From NCBI GenBank assembly GCA_950097015.1, contig CATNEN010000026.1:992001-1056000 (forward strand): a DNA stretch of 64,000 nt. The letters run 5' to 3'. The stretch comes from Macrostomum hystrix. Its lineage: Eukaryota; Animalia; Platyhelminthes. Made by a program: the position numbers and the translations under genes. The notes below the pieces were generated by a model that saw only the letters and a program-made list of their open reading frames with translations, was not told the DNA's origin and did no database searches. Below are positions 9,538-55,889 of this stretch, in pieces (the first letter of the stretch is position 1; each line of letters begins with the position of its first letter).

Positions 9538-9985
9538 CTGCAATAAATTGGTAATCTAATCATTGAATATTGATGATTGCATCATGAAAACTGTTACAGA
9601 GAACTAGAAATAGATGGTACAGCTTTATCATTAGTTAAATGTAGTTAAGTACTCCATGCCTAAAAACGACGAAATTTCTTCATTTTTTTATTTATTGCTT
9701 ACATTCACATCACCTACAGACGCAGCAAATTCCAAAGCTTTTTCAACTCCGCTTGACGACTACTTCTTATCGCTGGAAAACAGTTTTCACAGAATAAAAA
9801 ATCTTCTACTCAAAACCTATAAAAATTATCAGCTGTTGCGTCCAATCTCCACTAATTTTAAGCACGGAAAATTTTCAATTTGATGAAAATTCGGAATTAC
9901 AGTGGCAAAAACATAATTTCATTGTTAAAAAATGTTATTTTGTAACCTGATCCGGTGACAGGTGGAAGAACGAGCTGCACTTGAT

Positions 9986-24790: not shown

Positions 24791-25016
24791 ATAATAGGTT
24801 GTTGTTAAAACGAATTCCATATTTGACTGGGCTGCTGATCAATTTCGAAAAACTCTGCCGCAGACTATTATTGGATTTAATCGAAATTCATAATAGATAT
24901 ACACTCGATTTGATTTGGCTTATTTTATGCGAATATTGAGCCTTATAATGAAACAAAAAAATTATTCAATATTTGGCTCTATTTAGGCACGCATTGGGAG
25001 ATAAAATAGGCAGAAA

Positions 25017-25611
25017 AGTAGTAGGGCGAATTATGACACTGCCGCATTAGCACTGGGGAGATAGGAAAGCAGTGTAAAAGGATAGGAGCGGGGCCTACAC
25101 AGTGGAGATATGCAGGCCAATCAGGTGGGTTTGTGCAGGAGCCCATTACTGTGCTTATGACACTGCCGCATTAGCACTGGGGAGATAGGAAAGCAATGTA
25201 AAATGATAGGAAGGAAACGAATGCACTGCAGAGATAAGAGAAATGGCTGGCCTATCTCTGTGCATTAGGGATGGATTAACACTGCAGGGATAGGAAGAGA
25301 GGCCGGCCTATCTCTTTGCGCTGGGTGATTAACACAGCAGAGATAGGAGTAGAGGGGGTGTGGGGGTGTGGGGGCGAAGCCCCCACATTTTAATTAGCCT
25401 TTAATTTTCTTGGTCACTCTGCCTCTGACAAACGGAACTCGCTGGCGCTGGCCCATTTAACCTCCAAGCAGCTGCACTGAGAGAACGTTAAATGCTACCT
25501 TGATGTCTGTGATGCAGGTCATTGCAAGGTCCTGCCTTGCTGGTCTATCTCTCTCTTTGCATTGGGGGTGGGTTAACACTGCAGGGATAGGAAGAGAGGG
25601 TCCGCCTATCA
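25017..25611 (+). repeat. Left TIR (595 bp)
   Basis: Reverse complement of 40963-41929 apart from 124-bp unit copy number and one substitution found (25433 vs 41141). Confidence 0.95.
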
Positions 25612-26034
25612 TTTGGCACTGCAAATAGTCCTCGGAAATTCCGTGGGGTCCTAGTGTGTGAACAAACGCCTATGTGTTTGCATAGTGGACTCTGTCGCAG
25701 GTAAATCTGTCTGAGAGGGAGAGAGACAGTCAGTGCAGTCTGATAAACCGATTGATTATTCAGTTCCACTCCTCCAATGGAATTTCACTTTTGCTCTGGT
25801 CTCTCATATTTTTTCATATGAAGACAACAACAAAACAACTGTTGGCCTGGGCAAAACAGTGAAACCACCATCTGTTTGCAGTGGGTATGGGCAACACTGT
25901 AGAGATAGGACAGTGGATGCGTAGCATAGATACATAAATTCAGCCTAATGTTATTATAAGTTTTCTTAGTATTACAAGTGTATGCGCCCACAGTCTCACC
26001 CACCCCATTACGTTAACCCACCCCACTCCGCTGG

Positions 26035-26042
26035 TATATAAG
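26035..26042 (+). promoter_or_regulatory. Candidate TATA box upstream of the PC4-like gene
   Basis: TATATAAG about 80 bp before an ATG in strong Kozak context (GCTACCATGG, ATG at 26124). Confidence 0.5.
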
Positions 26043-26123
26043 GGTGGGGATTTTTTATTATCGTTAAGAGAGGATTTCTGTTAAACTAATAGCCATTTCG
26101 TCACGGAAGTTTGACCTGCTACC

Positions 26124-26866
26124 ATGGATCTTAGCGACGGCTTTAAAGTTCAAGTACAGGATTCATCGCTATCCGACGCTTCTACTCTTCTGACGGGGAG
26201 CTGAAGCCTGGAATCCCTGGATTCAACTTGAACGTACACCAATGGGAGAAGCTGAAGCAGCTAAGGCGCCAACTCGTGCAGGCTGCAGTCAACCGACGAA
26301 ACGTCACTGCCAAGCTGGGCTCCGACAAGCTCGTAGAAGTCAAGCGAGGAGTCATCTGGCTCAAGCGACTGCCGGAGGACTGCACGGAGGATTTCCTGAG
26401 ACGGAATTCGATCGAGATGACTCCCCGTCTGTGGCGAGCGCTGTGGTGCCATGTCGACCGGATCAGTAGTGAGCTGAGAGGAAAGTCACCGGAGTGCGAG
26501 TACGAGCTGGACCCTCAGGACATCAAGACCGAGCCGGACATCGAGAATCGGGCGGGCCAACACTCTAGTGAGGATGCGGACGACGAGAAGACGCTGCTGA
26601 TTTCCGAGTCAGACAACGCAACCTCCGAACCGCTTCCAGCTGCAGCCCAACTATCGACGCCCAAAGCATTCGGCTGCATCCCACAGCAGGACAGCGACCT
26701 GTCTAAGGATCCTTACTGGTATCAGGCCCGTGCGGCTGCGGGTCTCAGTGTCAACTGCTTGATTGGAAGCCGCAAGCGCAAGCAGCCATGGCCTCTGCGT
26801 AGGAGTGATGCGATCAAGTTTCCGAAGCTGACGGATGACTCAGATGAAAACAAGGACAACGAGTGA
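26124..26866 (+). pseudogene. PC4/Sub1-like ssDNA-binding (transcriptional coactivator p15) domain protein with long C-terminal tail; one frameshift near 26150-26165
   Basis: MDLSDGFKVQVQ (ATG frame), then GFIAIRRFYSSDGELKPGIPGFNLNVHQWEKLK in the frame of ORF 26228-26866. This matches the PC4 core pattern IDIR.(F/Y)...G...PG.KGI.L...QW..L. Confidence 0.8.
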
Positions 26867-27147
26867 ATTTCCAAGTGACAGTACATGCATCAAATAATTT
26901 CTAACTTCATTCATTTGGTCAAATGCGCACTAAGCTTATTATCTATCCAGCCATATTTCAGCAATATAGGCTACAGAGTAATTTTGCTCTGTGCTTCTCG
27001 CAATAGCTAATTTAACTGTCTTTTTTGGCTTTATTTCTCGGTATATGTATCAAGACATTTTATAAACTACATTGTGTCAATACAACTTAAGAAAGTTGCT
27101 AAAGACAAAAAATAATATTGATTCTGACATCCTCTTCATGTTGGAAA

Positions 27148-28216
27148 ATGGAAAAGCTTTACTACAACCCCGCTCAGCCGGCCAGTTTCTCAGGTGCATC
27201 AAAGTTGCAGCAGCAACTAGGGAAAAATAATGAGGTGAAATCTAGAAAATACATTGAGCTGTGGTTAACTGAACAGCCCGTGCACACACTGCACAGGTCA
27301 GCTAGAAGGCGCTATCCCAGAGCACCAATCATAGTGCGATCCATTGACGATCAATGGGAGCTTGACTTGGTTGAGATGATTCCATTCGCAAAGTACAATA
27401 ATGGCTACAAGTACATTCTCACATGCATTGATGCGCTGTCCAAATGTGCATGGGCCAGGCCATTGAAAAATAAATCAGCTGCAGAAGTGCAGTCCGCATT
27501 CGAGAGCATTCTGAAATACTCAAAACGCCAGCCTCGCACAGTCCGCACAGATCAGGGGAAAGAGTTTCTTAACACTACTTTTCGCCAATTCTGCATAGAG
27601 CGGGGGATTCTGGCTTTCCCAACCAATAGTGAGCAGAAAGCAGCCATCATTGAGCGATGGAACAGAACTCTGAAGAGCAAAATGTGGCGGTATTTCACGT
27701 ACAAAAGCACCCTGCACTGGGTTGACGTGCTGTCCAAGCTAGTGAAGTCCTACAACAGCACTTACCATAGAAGCATAAAAATGGCGCCAACAAGCGTCTG
27801 CAAAGAGAATGAATCTGAGGTCTGGATGAACCTGTACGATGGGAAAGCAATTGAGACAATAGAGAAGCTGAAGAAACCGAAATTCTGCGACAATCAGTTA
27901 GTGAGAATTTCCAATGCACCCAGGGTGTTCCGAAAGGGCTACAAGGCCAACTGGAGCGAGGAAGTGTACACTGTGGTGGCCAGGGCCCCGAAGCACTACC
28001 CGTACATGTACAAGATTAGAGACATGAAGGGGGGAAGAGATTCGAGGCCTCTTCCATGAGCAAGAGCTGCAGGCTGTTCCGGACTCACAGCGGTTGTATG
28101 TGATTGAAAAGATTTTGAAGACTGAGAAACGTCATGGAAAAATCCGATATCTTGTGAAGTGGGCCGGCTACAACTCCACCGGGTGGGTGGATGAAAAGGA
28201 CTTAAGAAAAGTCTAG
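27148..28216 (+). CDS. Retroviral-like integrase with C-terminal chromodomain; +1 frameshift in a G6 run at 28029-28034
   Basis: YYNP...FSG, WELDL (D), RTDQGKEF (D), IERWNRTLK (E). After removing one G: KGEEIRGLFHEQELQ...YVIEKILK...YLVKWAGYNSTGWVDEKDL. Confidence 0.95.
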
Positions 28217-28263
28217 TAGTAAACCTATTTCTGTGATAAAGATATTTTCTATTATGAGAAACA

Positions 28264-29064
28264 GTGTTATCAACAGTGAACATGCTGAAGGTACCTAGTG
28301 ACTTTCATTTTCACCTGCCTTCACCTATTTACTTGGATCGAAATGTGGACTATGAGGCTGGTCTGGTTGAAATCCATCTGCCTGTTGCATGGTTCAATCT
28401 TGACGAACCTTACTGCATCACTGTCTCAGTTGGAAGAGAGCACGAGGCCCTGGTTCTTCAACCTGGACGCTTTGCTAGAGTGGAGGAGCTGGTGGAGTGC
28501 CTGAATGAGCTGCTGACCAACTCTGAGTCTCTGTTCTTTGATGCGAGAAGCGACAGAGATGCTGAAATGGAGGCAGACGAATCGGGTCTGCTGGGGCGGC
28601 GTGGTAGTGCAAGAGAGTTCGCTATAAAATTTGAAATATGCAACTCAAGAACTGTTGTGCAAAACAGTACCGCGGAAGCAGAGCTGTTTCTTCCTCCTAA
28701 CAAAATTCTGCAGTGGCTTGGATTCGGAAGTCAAGCAGTTACGATCCGACCTGGTCGCTTTGTGTCAAAGCATTACATTGGCTGCCCACGCACCAGCTTA
28801 ATTAATGTCCACTGCAGCATGGTTGAATCAACTAACTGCAACTGCAGCTCCCTGCTGAGAACTGTTAGCATGAATTCTGAAATTGAATGGGGTTACTATC
28901 TGAGCAAAGTGTTTAAGAAAACGACATTCTTTCCGATTCAGAGAGTCAATTTCCTACAAAGTATTCGAATTCAACTGCGAGACATTTTTGACTGCACATT
29001 TATCGCGCAGACTTGCAGTCCTGTTTTGCTGACCGTTCAGATTCGCGAAAAAAAAATTCAATGA
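28264..29064 (+). CDS. Minor capsid protein (penton, PX-like)
   Basis: SDFHFHLPSPIYLD...YEAGLVEIHLPVAWFNL and C-terminal INVHCSMVE...LLRTV...FFPI...IRIQLRD..., typical of the Polinton penton. The start is uncertain (ATG at 28282, or a frameshifted ATG at 28254). Confidence 0.85.
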   Translation: MLSTVNMLKVPSDFHFHLPSPIYLDRNVDYEAGLVEIHLPVAWFNLDEPYCITVSVGREHEALVLQPGRFARVEELVECLNELLTNSESLFFDARSDRDAEMEADESGLLGRRGSAREFAIKFEICNSRTVVQNSTAEAELFLPPNKILQWLGFGSQAVTIRPGRFVSKHYIGCPRTSLINVHCSMVESTNCNCSSLLRTVSMNSEIEWGYYLSKVFKKTTFFPIQRVNFLQSIRIQLRDIFDCTFIAQTCSPVLLTVQIREKKIQ

Positions 29065-29267
29065 ATTATCAGCAGCTGATTAGGCAATACTCGGGAGCTC
29101 AAACAGGAGCTCAAAAGTCAGTACTTTATGGCTGCGGGAGTTCTCCAGGGCTTATGACGTACCAGCCTCCACCAGATGCTTCATCATCATCATTAACAGG
29201 GCTGATCAATAGCAGCCGTGGCAAAACAAAAAGTCCTAAGAAATCGAAACGAAAGCAGAAAAAATGA
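29061..29267 (+). CDS. Small putative core protein with basic C-terminus
   Basis: MNYQQLIRQYSGAQTG...KTKSPKKSKRKQKK; ATGA overlap with the penton stop; located directly before the MCP. Confidence 0.6.
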   Translation: MNYQQLIRQYSGAQTGAQKSVLYGCGSSPGLMTYQPPPDASSSSLTGLINSSRGKTKSPKKSKRKQKK

Positions 29268-29431
29268 AAGAAGAATCAACTAGCCGGAACACTAGTCGCA
29301 AGAGAGGAAGGAAGACAAAGACTGGCAAGAAAAAGCTTAAGAAAAGGACTGACAAGAAAAGGAAAGCAACTGGAAGAAAGCGCAAAGTCAACAGAAAAAC
29401 TGTGAAACGGGTGCTCGACTCTCTGTCCTAG
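29264..29431 (+). CDS. 55-aa protamine-like basic protein, putative genome-condensing core protein (not in the ORF track)
   Basis: MKEESTSRNTSRKRGRKTKTGKKKLKKRTDKKRKATGRKRKVNRKTVKRVLDSLS: 26 of 55 residues K/R. ATGA overlap upstream; stop 3 nt before the MCP ATG. Confidence 0.65.
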   Translation: MKEESTSRNTSRKRGRKTKTGKKKLKKRTDKKRKATGRKRKVNRKTVKRVLDSLS

Positions 29432-29434
29432 GCG

Positions 29435-30718
29435 ATGGCTTACGGATTTAACCCAAGGCTCGATCTGTTCAAGGCGCCTGTGCTACAGACTTGTATTGAG
29501 AAATCTGCTTACGTTGACATTCATCCTGTGAATTCTATTGTTGCAAACTCACCCATTGAATTTGACTGCCACCAATCAGCTGATGAGTACACTGATTTAG
29601 TTAATTCATTTCTATACATTCGGTGTCGCATTGTGAGACTGAATGGTGCATTGATGAGGGAGGATGAGCTGGGTGAGGATGGAGTTGTTGCAGACCGCAG
29701 AGACAGCAATGTGCATCCGGAAAATTTTGTTCTATCTACAGCCTTCTCAGATGTAATTGTTAGCATTAACCAGCGAATCGTCTCTGGCGGTGACCAGCTG
29801 TACCCGTACCATGCCTACTTCAAAGCACTGATGAGCTCATCCGATGCCCAGCAACTCAAATTTCACCCTGCCGGTTTCCTGGAACCCGACTCAGCTGATG
29901 AGGACCACACTGAGAACCACAGGACCTCCCAATGGAGGGAATATGCGGGACCACTCCTTAGCGACATTTTCCAGTGCCCTGTGTTTCTGCTGAACAATTT
30001 GCACCTGCACATCAAACTGGTGCCCAGTGACGGAGCATTTGGAATCAGAGCTCCAGCCGCCAACGACACCGCCTACAGGATGGAAATATCGCACTGCATC
30101 CTCTATCTCCGCCGAGTCAAAGTTCTGCCCCACATCAGCTTGGCTCACGAGCAGGGGCTGGCTAATCAGAATGCGCTCTACCCAATTGAGCGAACTGAAA
30201 TGCAAAACTTCATCCTGCCCCAGGGAATTCAGTCAAAGAATATTGAAGGATTCACACATGGAAAGCTCCCGAAATTCATCATGCTGGCCTTCGTCAACCA
30301 CCGAGCCTTCAATGGGCACCATCATTCCAGCCCGTTCCAGTTCCAAAACTTCAACCTGAGTCAGCTTGCTCTCAAGAAAGGGGGTGAATCCATGTGCCAC
30401 GGGGCATTTACACCTGAGAACAATTCGTTTGTGAGAGAATATTTGCACTACCTGAAAAGCTGTCAATCTGCGAGCCACACCAACTCGGTTCCATCGATTC
30501 CCTACCAGCTCTTCTCAAACGAGAACACTGTGTTCGCATTCGATCTGACACCCGAGGGAGCGGCTCTGTGGTACGGGCAGAAGGAGGGAAACCTGCGGCT
30601 GGAGATTCGGTTCCGACAGGCCTTGGATGAAGCCGTGTCCCTGATTGTCATGTGTGTGTATGACTCACTGATTGAGGTCACCAAGCACAGGGAGCTATTG
30701 CTGGACTATTCATCTTAA
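29435..30718 (+). CDS. Major capsid protein (double jelly-roll, PY)
   Basis: LDLFKAPVLQTCIE...DIHPVNSI...PIEFD...EYTDL..., LYPIERTE, LPKFIMLAFV...AFNG...PFQFQNFNL, FAFDLTP, GNLRLEIRF. ORF intact, 427 aa. Confidence 0.95.
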   Translation: MAYGFNPRLDLFKAPVLQTCIEKSAYVDIHPVNSIVANSPIEFDCHQSADEYTDLVNSFLYIRCRIVRLNGALMREDELGEDGVVADRRDSNVHPENFVLSTAFSDVIVSINQRIVSGGDQLYPYHAYFKALMSSSDAQQLKFHPAGFLEPDSADEDHTENHRTSQWREYAGPLLSDIFQCPVFLLNNLHLHIKLVPSDGAFGIRAPAANDTAYRMEISHCILYLRRVKVLPHISLAHEQGLANQNALYPIERTEMQNFILPQGIQSKNIEGFTHGKLPKFIMLAFVNHRAFNGHHHSSPFQFQNFNLSQLALKKGGESMCHGAFTPENNSFVREYLHYLKSCQSASHTNSVPSIPYQLFSNENTVFAFDLTPEGAALWYGQKEGNLRLEIRFRQALDEAVSLIVMCVYDSLIEVTKHRELLLDYSS

Positions 30719-31263
30719 TGAAAGTTGATATGGATGCCCTTCAGCTGCGTTCTCTTGCTAGATCCTTCCTGCCCAGCAATCGAATCTTGATAATCACCCT
30801 TTGCTTAAAGCAAAAGACCTGGATAATAAACTGGGATGAAGGAAGAATGCGTGAGAAAATTCCCAATCACAACAGAATCATCAGCTTCTTCTTGATAAAA
30901 CACAGCGTCTCGTTTGGACACTGGGTTGCATGTTTTGTTGGCAATGGAAATGTAGTTGAATTATTTGATTCTCTCGGTTGGAATGCACAGACTCTGAGTG
31001 CCATCCACCAATTTTTTGCTAATAAATTCAAGTTTCCTTTCCGCATGCTTTGCAATGTTAACCGAATCCAATGCAGTCAGTCGGACAAGTGCGGACTTTT
31101 CTGTCTCTATTTTGCATATCAAAGATTTCTTTTGAAGCGATCATTCGAATGGATTCTGCGAAATCTACACGTGAAAGAAAACTGCCCGTTGAATGACAGA
31201 ATGCTTTGTCAGTTTGAAGCCAGCTTAAGAAAAAGAGGTTTATGGCGAAAAAGAAATAGTTGA
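30718..31263 (+). CDS. Adenain/Ulp1-like cysteine maturation protease
   Basis: GHWVA (H), LFDSLG (D), RIQ...DKCGLFC (Q, C); TAATG overlap with the MCP stop. Confidence 0.92.
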   Translation: MKVDMDALQLRSLARSFLPSNRILIITLCLKQKTWIINWDEGRMREKIPNHNRIISFFLIKHSVSFGHWVACFVGNGNVVELFDSLGWNAQTLSAIHQFFANKFKFPFRMLCNVNRIQCSQSDKCGLFCLYFAYQRFLLKRSFEWILRNLHVKENCPLNDRMLCQFEASLRKRGLWRKRNS

Positions 31264-31280
31264 AATAAAGCCTAAGTGAG

Positions 31281-31928
31281 ATGGAGTCAGAAAGAGTGTA
31301 CTATGATGTCCGCCTGCGGCAGGGCAGCTGCATGATGGTCTGCGGACCCACCAATGCTGGAAAGACAACCTTCGTGAAGCATCTAATACAGTACAGGGAT
31401 GTATTATTCGACGTCCAGCCTGGGAGAGTGCTCTGGTACTATGGAATCGCACAGCCAGCGCATGCTGAGTTGAGCAGTCTTGGTGTGCAATTGTATCAGG
31501 GATTACCCACTAACTTTGAGAGCTCATTGATGAGCAATGATCTGGTCATTTTTGATGACATGATTGATGAAACTTCTAACTCTGCCTCAATGCGAAATAT
31601 TTTCACTGGACTCGCCCATCACCTGCCATGCTTTCTTGTAATGCTCACTCAGAATATGTTTTTCAAGGGCAAGGAGTTGCGGACCATGAGCTTGAACGCG
31701 ATGTACTATGTGATCCTAAAAAACCCCAGAGACCAGCTGCAGATCGCTGCATTGGGCAGGCAGTGCTTTCCATAGAAGCCTGGCTTCCTGCTTGAGGTCT
31801 TCAAGCATGTCACAGCGCAGGGCAGGGGGAGCTACCTGTTTCTGGACTTTCACCCTTGCACTCCCGATGAGCTGCGAGTGCGAGCCAGAATTTTGCCCAA
31901 TCAGAGGCCACATCTGGTTTATGCTTAA
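31281..31928 (+). pseudogene. A32-like FtsK/HerA genome-packaging ATPase with an in-frame TAG at 31773-31775
   Basis: Walker A GPTNAGKT, Walker B LVIFDD, KNPRD motif. The frame continues past TAG as KPGFLLEVFKH...GSYLFLDFHP.TPDELRVR to TAA at 31928. Confidence 0.93.
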
Positions 31929-31971
31929 GAATATAGGTTGAGAAATGCTATTAGCCTGAATTATTGCAACT

Positions 31972-32295
31972 ATGGAAGTGTTCGAAGCTCATCAAAGTTT
32001 ATTTGAAGTCCTTGCCTCACACAAATATACAATTAGCCTCAAGCGCGCAATAATACAGCTGAGTCCGAAAGAAGCTTGCACTTTTCTTGTCGAGGCCTGC
32101 CACAACCTATTGGAAGAGAATTTGCCATTTTCTCTTGTTGAAAAGACAGCGCTATTGAAATCTAAAAATATAATCCGCAAGATTGCCCGGCAAAGAAAAC
32201 AGAGTGACTTACTCAAAGCTTCTTTTATCAGAATCCTCCCCACTCTGCTGAAACTTGTGAAAAAGAAGAGGAAAAGAGATGCACAAATTCAATGA
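31972..32295 (+). CDS. Conserved small Polinton protein (PW-like)
   Basis: LVEACHNLLEENLPFS...KTALLKSKNIIRKIA pattern, basic; expected position after the ATPase. Confidence 0.65.
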   Translation: MEVFEAHQSLFEVLASHKYTISLKRAIIQLSPKEACTFLVEACHNLLEENLPFSLVEKTALLKSKNIIRKIARQRKQSDLLKASFIRILPTLLKLVKKKRKRDAQIQ

Positions 32296-32956
32296 GATGG
32301 TTCTGATCTCAAGGTCCGAGTATGAAATGCTGAGGAGGAGTGCCAAGCCCATTGAGTCTGTGAGTGACACGGCCATAAAGCAGGCACAGATGAAATGCGA
32401 TGATATCCTGTTGGCCCAAGACTGCCCAGATGATATGAAGACAGCCCTGTACCAGAGTGCAATGCAAAGCTTGCTGGCAAAGCGAAAGCAGACAGGAAAG
32501 GAAGCTGCATCAGAAGAGAAGAAAGCGAAGTTGATGAAGGCTGAGATGCCTCAAAGAAGCTGGGAGGAAAAGATCTACCAGTCAGTGCCACAGAAGCTCA
32601 AACCGAGGGCTCGGAGTCTATGGGCCATCCTATCTGACAGCCAGTCTGCTATCCGGGTGTCCGATAATGGAGAGGTGAACATTTCTGGGAACTCGATTCC
32701 TAACTAAAACATTGTCGATTTGATTCTGCACACAGTGAAGGACTCAAAAAGTTCTGGTCAGCCTGTTGGATGGCCCGCTTTCAGTGACTTGCTTCGCCAA
32801 AAAAATCTCAATGTGCCTATGTCAGCTGTTGGAAAATCTGTACATCAAGAAATTTTTGATACAATTGAAGATGCACAGCCTTCACTCAAAGGATTGGGCA
32901 ACAGGTCTGCATGGCTGAGGTTGAACAGGGGGAGAAAACAGTATTTAAGAAAGTAA
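32279..32956 (+). pseudogene. Conserved Polinton protein (PZ-like) with an in-frame TAA at 32705-32707
   Basis: MVLISR..., DDMKTALYQ, SVPQKLKPRA..L, GEV.ISG..IP*NIVDLI, P.GW.AF..LL...NVP..AVG. ORFs 32279-32707 and 32720-32956 share one frame. Confidence 0.75.
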
Positions 32957-32997
32957 CGATCATCGAATTATGCCGGTTTCGAGGCACTCGCTTGAGC

Positions 32998-33849
32998 ATG
33001 AACTACATAGACATTCAGGGCTTCCCGTGCGATGGAGAGAAGGATGACTTCATCGTGAAGGAGTTGGCGATCCTTGAAGTCAGGAAAGGAAGCTATCACC
33101 TTTCACACCACGTGTACGCTCCACCGTATGATTGGCAGAGAGTTTCACCTGACATGCGAATGTACTACAAACAGCTTTCGAAAAATCTACATAAATTCAA
33201 GTGGACCGATGGAACCCGGCCATATTTGCAATTAGCTGACGACATTGTGAGCATTGGTAGCGGCGTCAACTGGACAAGCGGAGAGAAAAAATCGATTTTT
33301 CTAACTGAGTTGTTGGGCAGACTGGTCTACAACTTAGACGATTTGGTCTCACATTCTAACAAAGACTCTGATACCGCATGTGCAGTGAGCAACTCATTGC
33401 TGCACTACAGCTGGCTGAAACCAACAGCTTGCATCAACTTAAGAAGCGACAAGTGCTCATGGCATAGAAGCTCAAGCAATTGCAGTAGCAGCAGCAGCCA
33501 GACTTGCAATCAGAATGATGATCAAAGGCGCTGCAACCTTGAGAATCACCAACCTGGTTGGTGGAGTGGATCTGAGACTGACTGGAGGCAGAGGCGCCCA
33601 GCTTCCTCTAAGGGAGCTGGCTCTCAGCATGGCTCATGTGATCTACCGACCCGTGTGGCCCAGAGTGCTCATCAAGCAGATGCGGAATCCCAGAGTTACC
33701 CTACTGCTCTACCCTACTGGGCAACTGAGCATCTGTGGCGCAAAGAGCTACGCCGACTCGGTCAGGGCTGCCCGGCGCTTCGTCGCTATGCTGCATCGCC
33801 GAGTGCCGGCTCAGCTGCTGCCTCGTCAAGCTTTCGGTGTGAGGATTAA
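32998..33849 (+). CDS. DEDD/DnaQ-fold-like accessory protein, probably catalytically altered; long C-terminal read-through overlapping the TBP gene
   Basis: YIDIQGF...FIVKELA...HHVYAPPYDW...HKFKWTDG..PY...GEKK.IFL...VYNLDDL. The first acidic motif is D-I-Q rather than D-x-E. Confidence 0.6.
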   Translation: MNYIDIQGFPCDGEKDDFIVKELAILEVRKGSYHLSHHVYAPPYDWQRVSPDMRMYYKQLSKNLHKFKWTDGTRPYLQLADDIVSIGSGVNWTSGEKKSIFLTELLGRLVYNLDDLVSHSNKDSDTACAVSNSLLHYSWLKPTACINLRSDKCSWHRSSSNCSSSSSQTCNQNDDQRRCNLENHQPGWWSGSETDWRQRRPASSKGAGSQHGSCDLPTRVAQSAHQADAESQSYPTALPYWATEHLWRKELRRLGQGCPALRRYAASPSAGSAAASSSFRCED

Positions 33850-34090
33850 GACTATCACTGCGCATGGAAAACTTGCAATTCAAAATGTGCTAAATCTAAC
33901 AAGTTTGTCACATCTGCTACCAAATGCTGAATATGAACCCGAATCATTTTCTGCTTTAATTTTCAAATTACGATTTTGCAAGTGTCTGCTTTTTCACAGT
34001 GGGTCATTTGTTCTAAGCGGTGCTCGATCTTTGAATCAGCTACGAACCGACAGCATCCGTCTGCGCGAATTAGTTTTTTCTCTATTATAA
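33515..34090 (+). CDS. TATA-box-binding protein (TBP)-like protein, both saddle repeats, ORF intact (191 aa)
   Basis: Repeat 1: ITNLVGGVDL...LRELA...YRPVWPRVLIKQMRNPRVTLLLYPTGQLSICGAKSYADSVRAARRF. Repeat 2: IKTITAHGKL...LNLTSL...AEYEPESFSALIFKL...CLLFHSGSFVLSGARS. Colinear with the TBP core. Confidence 0.92.
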   Translation: MMIKGAATLRITNLVGGVDLRLTGGRGAQLPLRELALSMAHVIYRPVWPRVLIKQMRNPRVTLLLYPTGQLSICGAKSYADSVRAARRFVAMLHRRVPAQLLPRQAFGVRIKTITAHGKLAIQNVLNLTSLSHLLPNAEYEPESFSALIFKLRFCKCLLFHSGSFVLSGARSLNQLRTDSIRLRELVFSLL

Positions 34091-34771
34091 AATATAATCG
34101 GAAAATAATTTATCACGCACTTTGTTTGTCACCATACGGTTGACAAAAACAACGTTAACTGGAGCTCAAACTTCTTCAAGATGTATTTATTACATTTATT
34201 ATCCTCAACAAGTTGAATATGAAACAAAAAGATTGAAAACCCAACCGTAATGTAACCGAACATGAAATTAATAAAAAAACATTATAATACACAATTAAAG
34301 AAGCAAATGACGCTGAAAATGCGAAACCCCGGATGCAAACATTAAGCGCATACTAAAAAAAAAAAACTGTCTATGACAACGCAGATAAAAAAGCAACTAA
34401 TTTGCATCCTTATCGAGATGAGGAAGGATGATCACTAAGTTGATTTTACTTTAACGAGAGAATTAAAATTGTTACAGAGAAACGAGATTTTAATTAAAAA
34501 AATTAAAAATTAAAAAATAAGTTCAATTTATTTGTATCACGCGTTCTTCAAATGGAAACATTTGAAACAATTACTATTCAGATGCAACGCTGGCATGAAT
34601 GAAAAAAGTAGTATTAGTAGTCTCCGAAACAAGATCCAACATACTGAGCATGCTAGCAAATCTGAGCATTCCAGAAACAGAAAACTGTTTAAAATTTAAA
34701 AGTAAAAACGACAATTAAAAAAAGCAACAATTGTCCACGACAACTTCTAGCCGTCACTACTTTTTATGAAG

Positions 34772-37700
34772 TTAAGCAAACCTGATGCGCTTCTGCTGGC
34801 CATGGAAATCCTGGGTCAGAGCATAGTGGCCATAGGGAAGACTTCGATTGCGGCTCAGCCATACTCGCTTGTCTTCCCAAACTGAGAGGCTTCGCTTCTC
34901 CAATACTGATGTGTAAACGCTGTGCTTCTTTGAGACAATTGTGGTCATGGCAACCGTCTGCTCCTGTTTCGAATTGAGCGCGGCAGCGTAGTCAGCATGA
35001 GTGATTTGAAGCTTCACAACAGATTGTTTCACGCCCTTGGCAGTTTTTTTGGCTTTCGCAGTTGAACTCTCAGCGGGAAGAAATGAATACAGCTTTGGCC
35101 GCAGCAGGACCCATTCTTGGTAGGTACCACCGCAGGATTCATCTTTGACGCAGCCAAGCTTGCCTTTCAGTTCCTCGGAGTAGTGCGGATGGTCTCGGGG
35201 ATAGTTCGACGAATCAAGGATATTTTCCTCTCTGAGCTTCGGGATCACATGCGATGTGAGCTCGTGATTTCTGAAGGCGAGAAAAAACGAGTCCGTGTCG
35301 CCACCGCATACCATCATGTCCTTGGAGCCGTCTGGTTCACAGAAAAGCGGCCGGAGCTTATCATACAGCAGGCTGTACATGCACATCTTCGACAAGTCGA
35401 GCACTGCCTGGCCGACGAAAATGGCCTTGTCAAGCTTTACTTTGTCTTTCCTGAACTGAAAGATGGATAGATTTTCATTTACAATAAAAACTCCGGTGCA
35501 ATTTGTTCGAGAGGAATAAGTTTCAACTTGAGTAGCGCTTGTGCAGATGCGCACATCACACCGCTTGCGCACGTTCTCCATCGTCTTTCCGAACAAAGAA
35601 TTGTTCTTTAGTTTGTAGAAATCCTTGCTAAAATCGGATGTTGCAAGTGCCCTCTTGCTATTATTGCTTGCAATGTACGAAGCAAAGATTTTCTTCTGGT
35701 TGAATTCAATCATCTTGAGAATTGACTTGATCTTCATTCCGTGCTGCAGGTAGAAGCGCAAGATGGTGCTGTGGACAATATAGCCATCCTTGTCCGAACA
35801 GGTCAGCAGAAGTTTCTCTGTTGCAGAGAACTTAAAATCGACATTGCCTGAGCGCTGCTCCGCGATTTGCTTCCACAATTCCAGCATAAACGGTGAAAAC
35901 TGGTCAACCTGCGGCTTAGATTTCTCTGGCGCAAAAGGTAATTCCTCTGTCACATCATGAATATCGGCTGGATATTCAAGGTCAACCTGCACGAGATAGG
36001 CTACTTCAGCTTCAGGATCGAGAGATATGAACTTTTTGGCGTCCCAAGACTGCAGTTCCTTTTCTGTCACCCACCTGAATCCGCTGCATGAGACTCACGC
36101 AGTCCTGCTGCTCATCATAGTCAGGCAAACTTTGGTTGTTTGCTTTAACATGGTGCACATTAACGAAAGACATGCCACCTCTAATGCCTTGTTCGAATAA
36201 ATGGTACATGTCAGGGTCTGTTAGCTGTTCGAGCACAACACCAGTTGATTTGAGAGCAGAGTCGTAAGACAGACCAGGTGTAGTTAGATAGTGCACTGGA
36301 TCGAGCCCATCTTCAGATAGACTGGCGTGACGAAATGCCTCAAAAATGTCTGCTAACTGGCGCACATCCATTTCCAGGTAGGCTAGCATGTAGTCTCGCA
36401 GACTACGACATTCGAATGCGGCCCATGCTGCCTTTGCTCGATGGTATTCCTCATCAGAAATCGCACAGTCGGTAAGACGGTTGAAAAATGCATTTTTCGG
36501 TGGCAGACTAGTCTGTTCAAGAATGTTGAACTCGGTCAGGAAATCATACGGAAAGACTCCCTTTTGGCGAATAATGTCTTTTGAAAGCAGAGGCCTAGAC
36601 TCTAGCAGCTGCAGAGTCAGTTTACAGTCGTTCTCTGAAAGATTGGAAAACAAATTTGCCAAACTTCCCTTTAGAAAGCAAAGAGAATCGATGAACTGAA
36701 TGGTAAACATTAGTGGCAGTGTCTTCCCGTTTTTTGTGTAGGTGCCAACAGGAAACTCCACCCGAAGTGATAGATAGCGCTCCGAAGTCTGTGGGACAAC
36801 ATTGAGTTTCCAATTTGGCATGCTACCAAGTGCGGTAGAAAGAAGAAGATGCAAATCGTAACCGCCCAAATTGTGAAAAATGACAGGCAAAAACCTGCGA
36901 CGAAGCTGAGCCCGCATGTTGCACTCCTGGCACGCGGCTCCTTTGAACTGCCCCGTCAGGTGATCATGGTCAAAATGTTTGTCAGCGGAACTGCTGAACT
37001 CAGATTGACAGTAGTGGCATGATGTGGCGTCATTGAAATCTTTCATGTCCGTTAGAGAAGATTTATCCGCTGCTTGGTGACTGTGCACCCGGTTCCACTG
37101 AAAGATTTCCCTGGAAAGCTTTTCAAGGGAACTGAGAAAAGCAAGGATGCACTCCTTGGGATCAGCATTGCAAAATGATTGGTACATGTCTGCTTTAGGA
37201 CGAAGTTCAGGCCCCTTCATGCACGCTCTGGAAACCACTAAGTAGGCTGCTGCACATGGCTCATGTTGAGCGATCAGATCGGCAGAGTCTGGTTTTTGTT
37301 TCAAAATGGCTTCCAGGTCGGCATAGGTCACAAATGGTGGACTGATTGTCTTCTGAAATTCCTTGAAGTTGATTTCGTTTGCTCCAGGAACAGGAAGGAC
37401 TTCCTTGATGGGATTTTCAGAAGCGATTTGGCATTCTCTGCTGTGCTCTAGAAGTCTCTCGCTGCAGTAGAATGAGGTCAAGCATCTGGTGCACCACTTT
37501 CTCATGGCAAGGCCGGCGCGGCTGTTCATCAGCCTGTCAAAGTTATTAATTGCACACCAGTGCTCTAATCCATAGCTGCCGCTGACCAACAGAAGCATTA
37601 GATGAGTTCGACCTCCTGGCTCATGCTTGAGACGACGGAGCAAGCTCACGTTACCTCGCTGCCATAGAAATGCAGAAATGCAAATTCCTGGATTGCTAGA

Positions 37701-38380
37701 CTCAACGAGATCAATGTCAGCGACACTGACGGGCATGGAGATTCCAGCGAAGTCAAGCTCGTTCAACCATTCATCGTAAGACGACAGTCTGCCAGGCGAT
37801 TTTTTTATCTTTGGATCGGCACTGTGCAATGCGGCAAGACAGGCGTACATGAAGCAGTCGTTGCCGGTACTTGGCGGATTGACGACAGCTTTCTTGTTTT
37901 TCAGACTGGCTGGGAGGTTAAATCTGGATGTTCTACCCTGGCGGAATCGAATCGGATTGTACCTAGCTAGATGTATATCCAGGAAGTTTATCTGAGTTAG
38001 TGTCCAACCACTACCATTCGTGTTCAACATGCTGCAAATCCTTTCCAACTCTTGCTCCTGTGCAACCAGCCAATCATGCAGATATTGATAGGTGGCAGTG
38101 GCATCCACACTCTTGTCAATGGTCTGCAGTTTGCAGCTGACCCACTTGTCTTCTTCTGTTAGAATCTGTCCATCCTTTATTCGCGCCATACGGATATTCG
38201 ACCTTGGCTGAACTTTATAATGGTGAATACCGATTCTTCGCTGCACTTCATCAATGACTATGCTTCCAGCCTGGACAAAAAACTCGGATGGCAGAGTGCC
38301 TGCATTATCTGGCCTCAGTCTTAATATTTCTAGCGATTCATTGAATGCTTGGGAAACTGTGCTGAGATGAACTGCCTGAC
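34772..38380 (-). pseudogene. polB: Protein-primed B-family DNA polymerase, main exon; motif A deleted with a frameshift at about 36085-36092
   Basis: ExoI YADLEA, ExoII FHNLGGYD, ExoIII YLEMDV, GIRGG, motif B KLKNNSLFGK, motif C GDTDS. The expected DxNxLY-containing segment between CVSLM and CSGFRWV is missing. Confidence 0.96.
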
Positions 38381-38560
38381 CTAGAAACGGGAGTTGCAAA
38401 AAAAACATCAGTTTTTTTCTCCCTTCACCTTGTCAATTTCTAAAACAAAACGGTAACTACCTACAGTAATCACACATTAAGTTTTAATATCCCTTTGCTC
38501 AAGCTAACTGCACTTTGCGAAACTTAAAATATTTTACCAACTTATTAATTTCCGGCTTAC

Positions 38561-38807
38561 CATCATTTTCACCTTGCTCCGAGTGACCAGTGACCGAGCT
38601 TCTAGCGCCGCTGCTTCCTGGACTGCCACCATTCAAACTGAAACCGCTGGAGCCATTGCCATGGCCGCTGCTTGACTCAAAATCTGACAGACTTCCTTCC
38701 AATGATTCCGACAGATTTGTGCACGAAGACTCAGAAAGGTCCTCCTCCGACTCGGAATAGTCAGATTCATCTGACTCGGACAAGTGTGATAGAGTAAAAC
38801 TTAGCAC
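38561..38807 (-). CDS. Acidic Ser-rich exon predicted to splice in frame onto polB (intron 38381-38560)
   Basis: Donor G|GTAAGC at 38560 and acceptor TTTCTAG| at 38381, both phase 1. The join reads ...EQGEND-G-QAVHLS; the 5' boundary is uncertain. Confidence 0.7.
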
Positions 38808-39301
38808 AAAGAAGAAGCAAGTATGCTTTGTTATTTATTTTTCCAAAGATGTAAGCTTAATTGGATCGTTTATTTTAACAAGTTGCATTAATACAGAACG
38901 AGCAATCATAGCCAGAAAACCAATTCAGTAACGCATGCATAACGAGCAGGATGTTTTTAAGCCATACTGAAAGTCAGGGGAAAATGCAACTGAAGATAAA
39001 GCAGTACAGTTATAGAGCAGAATTAGCTGACAATTCGGTTGCACATTCCTTCACCAGTCATGATCTAACCACATCTAACCTTTATATTGACATATTTTGT
39101 CATGCCCCCTCTCTTCATCTTTTCTAAAAGCCTTTTTGAAATTCAAAAATTTTAAAAAGCTTTAAAACGCATTTTCTTTCATTCTTCGCAGTCTACGCTG
39201 GCGCAGGCTCAGGTGTGAAAGATTGACATTGAGAAACAGATTGCGCAAGTGGCGCGAGATCAAGTTTAAAGTCGAAATAAAGACAAAAAATGGCATTCAA
39301 T

Positions 39302-40189
39302 TTAGACTGGTGTGACAGTAATTTTGTTGCCATCAAGCACAACAACGTAGCCAGCCCCGGTTACGTATGGTAGCAGCAGATTTACAGTAAGAGCACTTGA
39401 AATCGCATTACCACCGTTGATAATGTTGTCTTCTGGAATGCTGACTGTCGGCACTTCTATTTCCGCTAGCAGTTCGGCCAGCTCGTCCCGTGCAACCGAG
39501 CCAGCTTCAGCGGTGGAGACGGCTGGAACCGCAGCCAAAGCAGCTGGAGCATCAGGAGTCAAGGCTTCGGCGAGCGGAGTGGCAATAGCATTGCCGACAG
39601 ACTCAATGTCCATATCGCTGCCTTCTTCTTCGATCATTGGACTGTCAGGCTGAACTAACATCTGCTTTCCTCTGATTGCCGGCACGCGAGCAGTGACTGC
39701 TGCAGCAGCTCCAGTCACCACGTCAAGGTCTCCGCTGGTGCTAGGGCCGTCCCTGTCAGGTGGACGCTGACTCGTCGTCATGGCGGGCGCAACGAAGTCC
39801 TCCCCAGAGCTAACACTCTCACTTCTGGGTGCCCTTGGTCTAATAATGCCATTGATCACCTGACTCAGTACATTGGACCGTTGCTTAGCAGCGACCACCT
39901 CAGTAGCCTGTTGCTTTGCCGCAGCCATAACTAATCGGCGGAAAGAGCGCGCTGCTTCTTCGTTGCCAGGCAGCAGCTGATGCCCGCGGTGCCGATTGAT
40001 CTTGGAGTTTTTTGAGCATTTGCCAAGTCCACGGAAAGGAGCTATTTCGGAGCACTGCCAGCAGACTGTCCATCTTGAAAGATTGGTGCATCTTGAATGC
40101 CGGTCGGCCTGCAGTCCTCCTTGCTTGCACTTCTTGCAGTCAGTGCACACCTCATAGTGCCAAGTGGATGCCATTATATTTATTTTCAA
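39302..40189 (-). CDS. Polinton accessory protein with N-terminal Cys/His cluster and acidic disordered C-terminus
   Basis: CTDCKKC...DRHSRC...WTVCWQC, GHQLLP, IRGKQ; a homolog is present in the deleted element at 9986-10792. Confidence 0.7.
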   Translation of the reverse strand: MKINIMASTWHYEVCTDCKKCKQGGLQADRHSRCTNLSRWTVCWQCSEIAPFRGLGKCSKNSKINRHRGHQLLPGNEEAARSFRRLVMAAAKQQATEVVAAKQRSNVLSQVINGIIRPRAPRSESVSSGEDFVAPAMTTSQRPPDRDGPSTSGDLDVVTGAAAAVTARVPAIRGKQMLVQPDSPMIEEEGSDMDIESVGNAIATPLAEALTPDAPAALAAVPAVSTAEAGSVARDELAELLAEIEVPTVSIPEDNIINGGNAISSALTVNLLLPYVTGAGYVVVLDGNKITVTPV

Positions 40190-40780
40190 AAATTAATTTT
40201 TGCTTGTTAAACTAGACTAATAAATCGCAGCAGAAGCGTTGGATTTGGGTGCTTATGTACCCAGACCACTGCCCTGGTTTGCAATACAGACCCATTTCCC
40301 ATGCAGCATTTTGATCAACGATCAGCGTTATCTATTCCCGGCTTCCATATTATTGAGCGGTCAGTGTGAGCATGGGGTTTGTGGATTTTATGACTGTCTC
40401 GCGCAGACCTCGACCTCTAATTCAGTTTACAACTTAATTGGGGCGCACAAGCAGGTAGGCAACCACGGCTGAACCTAGCAACAGCTCCTTAACTTGGAGG
40501 TGTGGGCTTATTGTTCAGTTTCCTTTTCACAAATAGCAGGCCTTGTTTTCAATTAGGCTAAATAGATCCAACCTTATGCAGAAGCGTAGCAAATGCTATT
40601 TGTTAAGAATTCGCGAACAAATGCATAATAGAGATTAGTAAAAACTTTGCAGCACTATTTCCAATAGCTTTTGTGAGCATATTCTACCCACTCTGTTCAC
40701 TTTTTCTCTGAATACGACCCATATATTCCCAGTGACAATAAGTTATGTTAGTCTGCCTCCCTTCACTCTTTAATATCTCT

Positions 40781-40900
40781 GCAAGTGCGGCAGTGTCATA
40801 GGCACAGCAATGGGCTCCTGCACTTTCTGTGCAAGTGCGGCAGTGTCATAGGCACAGCAATGGGCTCCTGCACTTTCTGTGCAAGTGCGGCAGTGTCGTA
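40781..40900 (+). repeat. 50-bp subterminal tandem repeat containing the TIR core motif
   Basis: GCAAGTGCGGCAGTGTCATA at 40781 and 40831, and a one-substitution variant at 40881. Confidence 0.9.
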
Positions 40901-40962
40901 ACATCCCATACATCTGATTATGATTCGGTAAGCCTTAACCATTTAGCATTTGCTGTGCCTAG

Positions 40963-41929
40963 TGATAGGCGGACCCTCTCTTCCTATCCCTGCAGTGTTA
41001 ACCCACCCCCAATGCAAAGAGAGAGATAGACCAGCAAGGCAGGACCTTGCAATGACCTGCATCACAGACATCAAGGTAGCATTTAACGTTCTCTCAGTGC
41101 AGCTGCTTGGAGGTTAAATGGGCCAGCGCCAGCGAGTTCCATTTGTCAGAGGCAGAGTGACCAAGAAAATTAAAGGCTAATTAAAATGTGGGGGCTTCGC
41201 CCCCACACCCCCACACCCCCTCTACTCCTATCTCTGCTGTGTTAATCACCCAGCGCAAAGAGATAGGCCGGCCTCTCTTCCTATCCCTGCAGTGTTAATC
41301 CATCCCTAATGCACAGAGATAGGCCAGCCATTTCTCTTATCTCTGCAGTGCATTCGTTTCCTTCCTATCATTTTACATTGCTTTCCTATCTCCCCAGTGC
41401 TAATGCGGCAGTGTCATAAGCACAGTAATGGGCTCCTGCACAAACCCACCTGATTGGCCTGCATATCTCCACTGTGTAGGCCCCGCTCCTATCCTTTTAC
41501 ACTGCTTTCCTATCTCCCCAGTGCTAATGCGGCAGTGTCATAAGCACAGTAATGGGCTCCTGCACAAACCCACCTGATTGGCCTGCATATCTCCACTGTG
41601 TAGGCCCCGCTCCTATCCTTTTACATTGCTTTCCTATCTCCCCAGTGCTAATGCGGCAGTGTCATAAGCACAGTAATGGGCTCCTGCACAAACCCACCTG
41701 ATTGGCCTGCATATCTCCACTGTGTAGGCCCCGCTCCTATCCTTTTACATTGCTTTCCTATCTCCCCAGTGCTAATGCGGCAGTGTCATAAGCACAGTAA
41801 TGGGCTCCTGCACAAACCCACCTGATTGGCCTGCATATCTCCACTGTGTAGGCCCCGCTCCTATCCTTTTACACTGCTTTCCTATCTCCCCAGTGCTAAT
41901 GCGGCAGTGTCATAATTCGCCCTACTACT
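40963..41929 (-). repeat. Right TIR (967 bp = 595 + 3 x 124)
   Basis: 124-bp units start at 41411, 41535, 41659 and 41783; the terminal core is at 41907. Confidence 0.95.
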
Positions 41930-42044
41930 CAGAAATATACAGGGGAAATCCCGCTCAAAGAAGGGATCTAATAAAAATTGAAAAATTGAATTAAAAATTG
42001 AAATAAAAAGGCATGCATGCAGGCCACACCGAGCTGCTTTCTCT

Positions 42045-55432: not shown

Positions 55433-55889
55433 GCACCCAGGGGCGTGTCGTGCAATTTACGCCCTTGAGGGCCAACCTCCAAGGCACAGTGAGAGTGTAC
55501 ACTGTCTCAAGATGAGAAAGTTAGCGCAGCTGCATACACCTGTGTGAGTGTGTGCTCAGGAGTCAGTGAAATGGGCAGAATTGCCTCCTCGGTGGCTGCG
55601 AATTTCAGATAAGGTAAAAATGCATTTCACTGTTTAAAAGAAAACATTTTTACCCTTTCCTTACATAACTCAGGTACACATCATCATTCCTTAGTGACAG
55701 AAACTTTAAGTTATTTATGAATTCTACGATAATTTATGAAAGAATTGTTTTCTCGCTCGTCTACTTCTAGTAGAATTGTTGCCATTACAATTCCAAAACA
55801 CTTTTACTATATACTAAACATAGATTTACTGCTCTGATAAAAGTGCCCCATTAAAAATTAGTTCCGAGATATGAGAGTAAGTATGAGAT

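Follow-up and report, generated by a model that had tools for sequence, protein, structure and literature searches.

The Polinton element and its genes

The window analysed is a stretch of 64,000 nucleotides of Macrostomum hystrix DNA, and it contains a young Polinton/Maverick element of 16,913 bp, bounded by terminal inverted repeats (TIRs) and a 6-bp target-site duplication (TSD). The following features were assigned.

25011..25016, no strand: left TSD (CAGAAA)
25017..41929, no strand: whole Polinton/Maverick element
25017..25626 (+): left TIR
26035..26042 (+): consensus TATA box (TATAWAWR), by sequence alone, upstream of the plus-strand gene block
27118..28059 (+): retroviral-type integrase
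28264..29064 (+): ORF in the position of a minor capsid (penton) gene, an assignment resting on position only
29435..30718 (+): putative major capsid protein (MCP)
30718..31263 (+): adenain-like cysteine protease (weak match)
31281..31931 (+): putative P-loop (packaging-type) ATPase gene, broken by one in-frame stop
31972..32295 (+): small conserved ORF without assigned function
32279..32956 (+): conserved ORF without assigned function, interrupted here by one in-frame stop
32911..33849 (+): upstream ORF (312 aa, no assigned function), the last ~111 codons of which overlap the TBP N lobe in another frame
33515..34090 (+): TBP homolog (191 aa, core saddle only, pI 11.45)
33542..33796 (+): TBP N-terminal lobe (about residues 10-94)
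33836..34084 (+): TBP C-terminal lobe (about residues 108-190)
34772..38408 (-): protein-primed family B DNA polymerase (pPolB) gene, convergent with TBP, broken by one frameshift and containing an Endonuclease_7-like segment
38499..38807 (-): small acidic, Ser-rich ORF upstream of PolB, taken from the ORF list only
39302..40189 (-): ORF with a Cys-rich N-terminus (295 aa), the first gene of the minus-strand block
40948..41929 (-): right TIR, including a 124-bp tandem array (41363-41915, 4.5 copies)
41930..41935, no strand: right TSD (CAGAAA)

The inverted repeats include a 596-nt arm pair at 99% plus outer repeats, and the same hexamer directly flanks both TIR ends; thus the TIR/TSD-bounded element described in the original prediction was confirmed. 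The left TIR was also similar to that of L001, a diverged copy from M. lignano. The integrase matched Pfam rve with E=2.7e-14. Pfam DNA_pol_B_2 matched both pieces of the polymerase gene, Endonuclease_7 gave E=1.8e-7, and comparison with the intact 1152-aa ORF of L001 gave two HSPs in two frames at 75-78% identity. The protease candidate matched Peptidase_C5 only weakly (E=5.6e-4, 20.1 bits, just under the cutoff of 21.3). The ATPase gene gave only weak P-loop hits in the PDB, while it matched the 216-aa ATPase of L002, a Logan contig, at 77% identity in a single frame with one internal stop; its positional counterpart in L014, a related IMG/VR Polinton contig, hit Adeno_IVa2 and Pox_A32. The putative MCP had no Pfam or PDB sequence hit, but homologs at 27-80% identity lie next to rve, PolB, ATPase and protease genes in L014 and in L012 and L013, two distant metagenomic Polinton contigs. 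No Pfam or PHROG hit was obtained for the ORF at 28264..29064, and no Pfam hit for those at 31972..32295 and 39302..40189. The small ORF at 31972..32295 was conserved in the Logan contigs L002 and L005 and in L009, another M. lignano copy, at 48-57% amino acid identity. In case of the ORF at 32279..32956, the relatives L003, L005 and L006 (Logan contigs) have a single ORF of 215-230 aa, and in the window the two pieces lie in the same frame. Since three genes of this particular element carry one lesion each, it is probably not autonomous.

The pattern scan found a single consensus TATA box between 25017 and 41929. When the 160 nt upstream of each element gene were read by eye, no shared motif could be seen.

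A TBP homolog with an altered DNA-contact face

The ORF at 33515..34090 starts with ATG and has no internal stop. In order to test whether it encodes a TBP, profile, sequence and structure searches were carried out. Pfam PF00352 (TBP) matched with E=1.7e-24 (85.9 bits against a cutoff of 22.9) in two stretches, the best of which covered residues 10-94, so both lobes are present. A sequence search of the PDB returned TBPs with E from 6e-17 to 2e-10, the only exception being one 12-bit chance-level match at E=1.5, and the HMMER alignments covered both lobes. The AlphaFold (AF2) model had a pLDDT of 95.8 and a pTM of 0.87, and the order of strands and helices was repeated in each lobe, as expected for the saddle fold. 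The top 44 PDB hits of Foldseek were all TBPs, with TM 0.76-0.83 and an rmsd of 2-3 Å for nearly all. Thus the observation of the original prediction, an intact two-repeat TBP homolog inside a Polinton, holds.

The residues were examined by column shares in an alignment with 63 other TBP-family proteins. The C-lobe Phe pair is kept (F145 and F160, F in 59/63 in both columns), as is the acidic stirrup pair (E141, E in 53/63, and E143, E in 61/63), which corresponds to the TFIIB-contacting positions C.L3.2 and C.L3.4 defined in PMC7221094. The first Asn is also kept (N13, N in 60/63). Tyr66 sits in the second N-lobe Phe column (F in 58/63, Y in 4/63) and Thr113 in the second Asn column (N in 58/63), as the original prediction had claimed. 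However, its placement of Trp in the first N-lobe Phe position was off by one: both HMMER and MAFFT put Pro49 in this column (F in 59/63), and Trp48 lies one residue before it. Consequently neither the full set of four DNA-kinking Phe residues nor the pair of minor-groove Asn residues is present. Further departures, which had not been listed before, were S72, C74, T115 and S168, together with Q70 and S164 in place of the two Gly-Lys lysines. All of these residues are invariant in the five full-length family members. W48, P49, Y66, S72, C74, T113 and S164 are also shared by P0009, a 54%-identical metagenome protein encoded on a 1.1-kb contig, which has H70, S115 and C168. The N lobe is almost invariant within the family. 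The pI of 11.45 exceeds the maximum of 10.27 among the 63 references.

Conservation, selection and relatives

An exhaustive HMM search of 1.84 billion cluster representatives gave only 5 proteins with E<1e-30 (at most 2.3e-44), Macrostomum proteins and one metagenome protein, while the next hit was at 1.9e-23. Identity to the 63 other TBPs was 22-32%. In the PDB search the protein scored higher against archaeal TBPs (60-65 bits) than eukaryotic ones (44-49 bits), but it was far below the NCBIfam archaeal TBP cutoffs (72 bits against 181-347). PHROGs gave nothing for TBP, and the exact protein of the window was not found on record. No labelled metazoan TBP appeared among the hits looked up. Hence, as judged from identity and score gaps, in a comparison without the host's own TBP sequence, rather than from a phylogeny, the gene is not a host retrocopy, which had been named beforehand as a refuting condition.

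Further copies were found in L001 and L009, at about 71-74% nucleotide identity, and in the Logan contigs L002-L006. All keep the order ATPase, small ORFs, upstream ORF, TBP, and in L001 TBP is also convergent with an intact PolB ORF. Four diverged lineages thus retain the gene, with dN/dS of 0.20-0.26 in all six pairs and dS of 0.75-1.19, which indicates purifying selection. Evidence for expression is indirect: the GenBank gene models P0001 and P0007 come from an RNA-seq-guided annotation (PMC5730564).

The upstream ORF overlaps the first ~111 TBP codons in a second frame, which is open and ends at the homologous place in all four lineages. The probability of an open frame was 0.0006-0.05 under synonymous-codon permutation, and the other four frames carry 2-9 stops each. 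This ORF had no Pfam, PHROG or PDB hit and only one database homolog, and its AF2 model was uninformative (pLDDT 32).

TBP-like genes were also detected in L012 and L013. Since these are not specifically similar to the present family (17 bits), both common descent and repeated capture remain possible. In L014 no TBP could be detected, so the gene is not indispensable to all relatives. Family-specific pattern scans of IMG/VR and of JGI metagenome contigs found no relative. The best non-family hits proved to be cellular genes when their context was checked: a Blastocystis TBP among housekeeping genes, an intron-rich gene of Penstemon, a gene on a prokaryote-style metagenome contig and an Adineta gene model with four TBP stretches.

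A previous mention exists in Starrett et al. 2021 (PMC8502044), where TBP is labelled in the Fig. 5 legend for MELD viruses with adintovirus-like PolB, mid-size PolB/integrase virus-like elements. It is only a figure label, in the section on non-animal datasets, without analysis of residues, selection or distribution. A TBP gene in such elements is therefore not unique, although it is undescribed for animal-type Polintons in the literature library searched.

TBP-like proteins of large dsDNA viruses (Nucleocytoviricota, mirusviruses) were found by Foldseek in BFVD at E down to 8e-12, but the similarity (TM 0.44-0.77 among the top 15 matches) was lower than to cellular TBPs. According to PMC7221094, almost all viruses with a TBP-like gene also encode their own TFIIB, they mostly carry their own RNA polymerase, and only about 40% of viral TBPs keep the C.L3.2 acidic residue. 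In the present element both Glu are kept and no TFIIB or RNA polymerase Pfam hit was found among the ORFs scanned, which left out the small ORFs at 32720 and 38499. Among cellular paralogs, TBPL1 (TRF2/TLF) has a TBP fold with Trp instead of Phe at the N-lobe DNA-contact position N.L5.1 (PMC7221094), read by the authors as changed promoter specificity; here N.L5.1 is Tyr, and the Trp sits in the stirrup next to a Pro. No labelled TBPL1 sequence came back from any search, and the present family appears only in Polinton contexts.

Possible role of the protein

The original prediction, in which the element carries its own promoter-recognition factor, either retargeting host Pol II with non-standard specificity or acting as a decoy, was partly supported. 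The analysis demonstrates the TBP fold with both lobes (the fold by profile match and predicted structure), the location within a TIR/TSD-bounded Polinton, the conserved gene order in diverged copies, purifying selection, the family-invariant changes at DNA-contact positions, the retained TFIIB-contact glutamates and the very basic charge, while DNA binding, altered specificity, partnership with host TFIIB and a role in element transcription, whether by retargeting or as a decoy, are inferred. With moderate confidence, we suggest that the protein is an element-specific core-promoter factor, encoded by a stable, selected gene of a Polinton/Maverick lineage in Macrostomum-type flatworms. In this view it binds and bends DNA with its concave face, which carries lineage-fixed substitutions at about half of the canonical minor-groove contact positions, so its preferred sequence is probably not the standard TATA box. 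The canonical acidic C-lobe stirrup would let it recruit the host's TFIIB-type factor and RNA polymerase II (or III) to element promoters; no RNA polymerase or TFIIB of the element's own was recognised among the ORFs scanned. However, two phosphate-contacting lysines and one intercalating Phe are lost, so canonical DNA bending might be impaired, no shared promoter motif was seen by eye, and the single consensus TATA box could simply serve host TBP. In logic the model resembles cellular TBP paralogs such as TBPL1 and the TBP-like late-gene factor of beta- and gamma-herpesviruses (KSHV ORF24, EBV BcRF1, HCMV UL87), by which a nuclear DNA virus without its own polymerase directs host Pol II to non-standard viral promoters (e.g. 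PMC7498053, PMC4893493). No sequence relationship to the herpesviral proteins was seen, and these are large, multi-domain, part of a six-protein complex and contact Pol II directly rather than through TFIIB; the analogy is thus one of function only.

Other roles were considered less likely. The protein could sequester host TBP partners (TFIIB, TFIIA, NC2, Mot1) or block host promoters without nucleating initiation, thereby reshaping host transcription to the element's advantage; this would agree with kept TFIIB-contact glutamates beside altered DNA-contact residues, and with a core lacking a regulatory N-terminal extension. Yet the altered residues are invariant under strong purifying selection, which fits a used DNA surface better than a relaxed one, and the extreme positive charge favours nucleic-acid binding, so this possibility seems unlikely. 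The charge would also suit an architectural DNA-bending protein that binds the repeat-rich TIRs in replication, integration or packaging, much as bending factors assist protein-primed replication origins. The tail-to-tail position with pPolB here and in L012, and the arrays of short and 124-bp repeats in the TIRs, speak for this. It is nevertheless also improbable, since the retained Glu pair has no obvious use in such a role, the two-lobe TBP-like proteins of archaea, eukaryotes and dsDNA viruses are discussed as transcription factors (PMC7221094), and in L013 the gene lies next to the ATPase and not PolB.

That the gene is a mere passenger, a captured host paralog, one-off retrocopy or decaying capture with no role for the element, is very improbable and already largely refuted. 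Polintons and other MELD viruses do pick up host genes, and Starrett et al. describe TBP among "homologs of host proteins" in the preprint legend, but the low identity to non-family TBPs, the large E-value gap, the presence in at least four diverged lineages in conserved gene order, the dN/dS of about 0.2 with dS near 1 and the second reading frame co-maintained over the N lobe are against it. A further-reaching possibility, not excluded but doubtful, is that a whole clade of animal (meiofaunal flatworm-type) Polintons carries TBP as an ancestral, near-core gene and runs its own promoter-recognition system on host polymerase, with the N lobe re-tooled for a non-TATA element and, in the Macrostomum lineage, overprinted by a second, co-selected frame of the upstream gene.

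The conserved dual-coding region over the TBP N lobe, inferred from sequence alone, is a clean case of gene overprinting in a eukaryotic virus-like element, and the TBP gene gives a marker for tracing a Polinton clade in flatworms and in metagenomes. It offers a compact natural example of how TBP specificity can be changed, as inferred here, while the adaptor surface is kept. Polintons/Mavericks are usually described as relying entirely on host transcription; a conserved, selected TBP homolog with a re-modelled DNA face but an intact TFIIB-contact site would mean that some of them bring their own core-promoter recognition, a strategy otherwise known from herpesviruses (a TBP mimic) and giant viruses (full orthogonal systems).

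A predicted TBP-fold protein and the Polinton that carries it

The existence of the proposed reading frame was examined first. An ATG-initiated ORF of 191 aa without any lesion was found at 33515..34090 on the plus strand. The TBP model of Pfam matched this protein with E=1.7e-24 in two stretches, and a sequence search of the PDB returned TBPs only, apart from one 12-bit chance-level match at E=1.5. Archaeal TBPs gave the best scores in this search (60-65 bits, E about 1e-16), while the eukaryotic TBPs scored 44-49 bits. The AlphaFold2 model, which was built on an alignment of 69 sequences, had a mean pLDDT of 95.8 and a pTM of 0.87, and the same order of strands and helices was seen in each half. 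Foldseek placed this model on solved TBPs at TM 0.76-0.83, with an rmsd of 2-3 A for nearly all of them, and the first 44 PDB hits were all TBPs. The match to the TBP-like proteins of giant viruses in BFVD was weaker (TM 0.44-0.77 among the top 15). The TBP fold is therefore established as far as computation can establish it.

The ORF lies within a Polinton/Maverick of 16,913 bp. The inverted repeats at the two ends are 99% complementary, and the hexamer CAGAAA flanks both ends. An rve integrase, an adenain-like protease (just under the Pfam cutoff) and a protein-primed family B polymerase were identified inside the element, together with a putative P-loop ATPase and a 427-aa putative capsid protein (MCP), whose homologs sit beside integrase, polymerase, ATPase and protease genes in other contigs. 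TBP is the last gene of the plus-strand block and lies tail-to-tail with the polymerase. The features concerned, and the repeats found elsewhere in the window, are the following.

25017-25626 and 40948-41929, the terminal inverted repeats (TIRs)
41363-41915, a 124-bp tandem array of 4.5 copies in the right TIR; the left TIR (25031-25211) has fewer copies, and shorter 50- and 56-bp repeats also lie in and near the TIRs
26035-26042, the only consensus TATA box inside the 16.9-kb element, just inside the left TIR region and ahead of the plus-strand gene block
32279-32956, an ORF with one in-frame stop relative to its single-ORF relatives
32911-33849, the 312-aa ORF upstream of TBP
33515-34090, plus strand, the TBP homolog
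36012-38408, minus strand, a polymerase ORF containing a segment that matches Pfam Endonuclease_7 (E=1.8e-7)
39302-40189, an ORF with a Cys-rich N-terminus
6429-8053, minus strand, a truncated second Polinton copy, with a TIR-like stretch (about 80% identical to the TIR of the main element) followed by the N-terminal part of a polymerase gene (about 70% identical), and without TBP
9986-10792, an ORF near the truncated copy, with a Cys-rich N-terminus that looks like that of ORF 39302-40189
8968-9563, a perfect short tandem repeat, open in several frames
about 12600-18300, a long AT-rich region with a regularly recurring TATAAAAA motif on the minus strand
55851-61076, about 5 kb with extreme GC skew (about 0.8) and very long ORFs open in several frames on the minus strand

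The tandem repeat at 8968-9563 and the AT-rich region look like host satellite or tandem-repeat DNA, and the GC-skewed stretch suggests a strand-biased repeat or satellite. Since its TIRs are nearly identical, the main copy is young. However, it is not intact, as the polymerase has one frameshift, and the ATPase and the ORF at 32279-32956 have one in-frame stop each. TBP and the ORF just upstream of it are unbroken.

Relatives, gene order and selection

The closest proteins were found in Macrostomum lignano (79% identity) and in Logan assemblies of several sequencing runs (68-76%), while the exact protein encoded here was not found on record. An exhaustive profile search of 1.84 billion cluster representatives returned only five proteins with E<1e-30, namely the family representative, three merged M. 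lignano gene models and one 183-aa protein from a JGI metagenome (54% identity). These are followed by a gap to generic TBPs at 1.9e-23 and weaker, the best of which are cellular genes in cellular neighbourhoods. Identity to 63 diverse TBPs never exceeded 32%, and the archaeal TBP models of NCBIfam scored 72 bits against cutoffs of 181 and above. The family is thus an isolated long branch, and it is not a recent copy of a host TBP.

Two other M. lignano loci (L001 and L009) are Polinton copies which are only about 71-74% identical in DNA across the syntenic region. The same order of ATPase, small ORFs, upstream ORF and TBP is kept in both. In L001 the TBP is convergent with an intact 1152-aa polymerase ORF, and TIR similarity is visible. 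The short Logan contigs L002-L006 show the same gene order. Pairwise Nei-Gojobori estimates among four lineages gave dN/dS values of 0.20-0.26, with dS of 0.75-1.19. One-off presence, nesting with the host gene and a dN/dS near 1 had been set beforehand as grounds for rejecting the original prediction. In the case of the first and the third the data point the other way, while identity and score gaps, rather than a tree, argue strongly against nesting with the host gene. There is also indirect evidence of expression, since the GenBank gene models that gave two of the related proteins (P0001 and P0007) come from an RNA-seq-guided transcriptome annotation (PMC5730564).

DNA-contact residues, partner residues and the overlapping reading frame

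The residues at the predicted DNA-binding face were compared with the corresponding columns of the 63 reference TBPs.

Residues at DNA-contact positions and their share in 63 reference TBPs (feature; residue here; share)
First Asn; N13 (kept); N in 60
C-lobe Phe 1; F145 (kept); F in 59
C-lobe Phe 2; F160 (kept); F in 59
First N-lobe Phe; Pro49; F in 59
Residue before the first N-lobe Phe; Trp48; usually R, Q or K
Second N-lobe Phe (N.L5.1 of PMC7221094); Tyr66; F in 58
Second Asn; Thr113; N in 58

Further majority residues are replaced at S72, C74, T115 and S168, and the lysines of the two Gly-Lys turns are replaced by Q70 and S164. Every one of these residues is invariant in the five full-length family members. 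W48, P49, Y66, S72, C74, T113 and S164 are also shared by the 54%-identical metagenome protein, which has H70, S115 and C168 at the other three positions. The protein is exceptionally basic, with a pI of 11.45 against a maximum of 10.27 among the references. The description in the original prediction is therefore right, except that Trp48, which had been put at the Phe position, is one residue before the Phe column and not in it. According to PMC7221094, changing the L5.1 Phe to Tyr affects TATA binding, and TBPL1 carries Trp at N.L5.1, which was read by the authors as a sign of different promoter specificity.

E141 and E143 occupy the two C-lobe stirrup positions (C.L3.2, C.L3.4) that contact TFIIB, and charge reversal at the human equivalents reduces transcription in vitro (PMC7221094). 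The same paper reports that only about 40% of viral TBPs keep C.L3.2 and that almost all viruses with a TBP-like gene also encode a TFIIB-like protein. Here both glutamates are invariant, and no TFIIB-like or RNA-polymerase domain was found in the element ORFs scanned.

An unexpected overlap was also observed. The 312-aa upstream ORF (32911-33849) runs about 335 nt into the TBP ORF in another frame, covering its first ~111 codons. This frame is open and ends at the homologous place in all four diverged lineages examined. When the synonymous codons of TBP were permuted, the second frame stayed open in only 0.06-2% of the trials using the whole-gene codon pool, and in 0.2-5% using the local pool. 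All 15-19 codon junctions at risk avoid a T in the preceding third position. The other four frames of the same stretch carry 2-9 stops each, and the same second frame has 3-7 stops in the remaining 80 codons of TBP. The overlap is GC-rich (0.56-0.59, against 0.38-0.46 in the rest), and the synonymous divergence of TBP within it is reduced relative to the rest of the gene in every pair, by about half in most. This also explains why the N lobe is almost invariant within the family. We conclude that this is probably a real overprinted gene pair. The upstream protein gave no profile hit and only one database homolog, and its predicted structure was unusable.

Wider distribution and interpretation

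The capsid-type protein has relatives down to 27-28% identity in metagenomes. A 14.7-kb beach-sand metagenome contig (L012, MCP 33% identical) has polymerase, integrase, ATPase and protease, as well as a 169-aa TBP-like gene (Pfam E=4.6e-14 on the C lobe), which is again convergent with the polymerase. An 18.5-kb contig (L013, MCP 28% identical) has a TBP-like gene in two adjacent ORFs, next to the ATPase. These TBPs are no closer to the Macrostomum family than to cellular TBPs (about 17 bits), although they resemble each other. In a third related contig, from IMG/VR (L014), no TBP could be detected; a terminal 169-aa ORF (11373-11885, minus strand) gave a weak, sub-threshold hit to the transcriptional coactivator PC4 (E=0.0034). 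Matches to Endonuclease_7, weaker than that in the window, appear in the polymerase genes of all three contigs. TBP-like genes therefore recur in this Polinton group, either by descent with fast divergence or by repeated capture.

In the library searched, no paper links Macrostomum with Polintons in any relevant way. The only Polinton-related mention of TBP found there is a gene label in the legend of Figure 5 of Starrett et al. 2021, in the section on non-animal datasets, which comes with no further analysis. The presence of a TBP homolog in a mid-size PolB/integrase element is thus not wholly new, while its conservation, its derived surface, its overlap with a second gene and its occurrence in animal-type Polintons appear undescribed.

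Taken together, the observation of an intact TBP homolog with an altered DNA-contact surface was confirmed, with one correction of the register. The interpretation offered with it, that the element carries its own promoter-recognition factor, is supported in part: the identity as a TBP encoded by a Polinton is secure, whereas the function of the protein, including any binding of DNA or TFIIB, is inferred. On present evidence we consider an element-specific core-promoter factor working through host TFIIB and polymerase somewhat more likely than not. An architectural DNA-bending role seems unlikely, a decoy slightly more so, and a mere passenger gene very improbable. The nearest analogy in function is the TBP-like late-gene factor of beta- and gamma-herpesviruses, which steers host Pol II to non-standard viral promoters, although this is an analogy only and no sequence relation was seen. 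The invariant stirrup glutamates, with no TFIIB-like or RNA-polymerase domain among the element ORFs scanned, fit a factor that plugs into the TFIIB and polymerase of the host rather than an orthogonal system.
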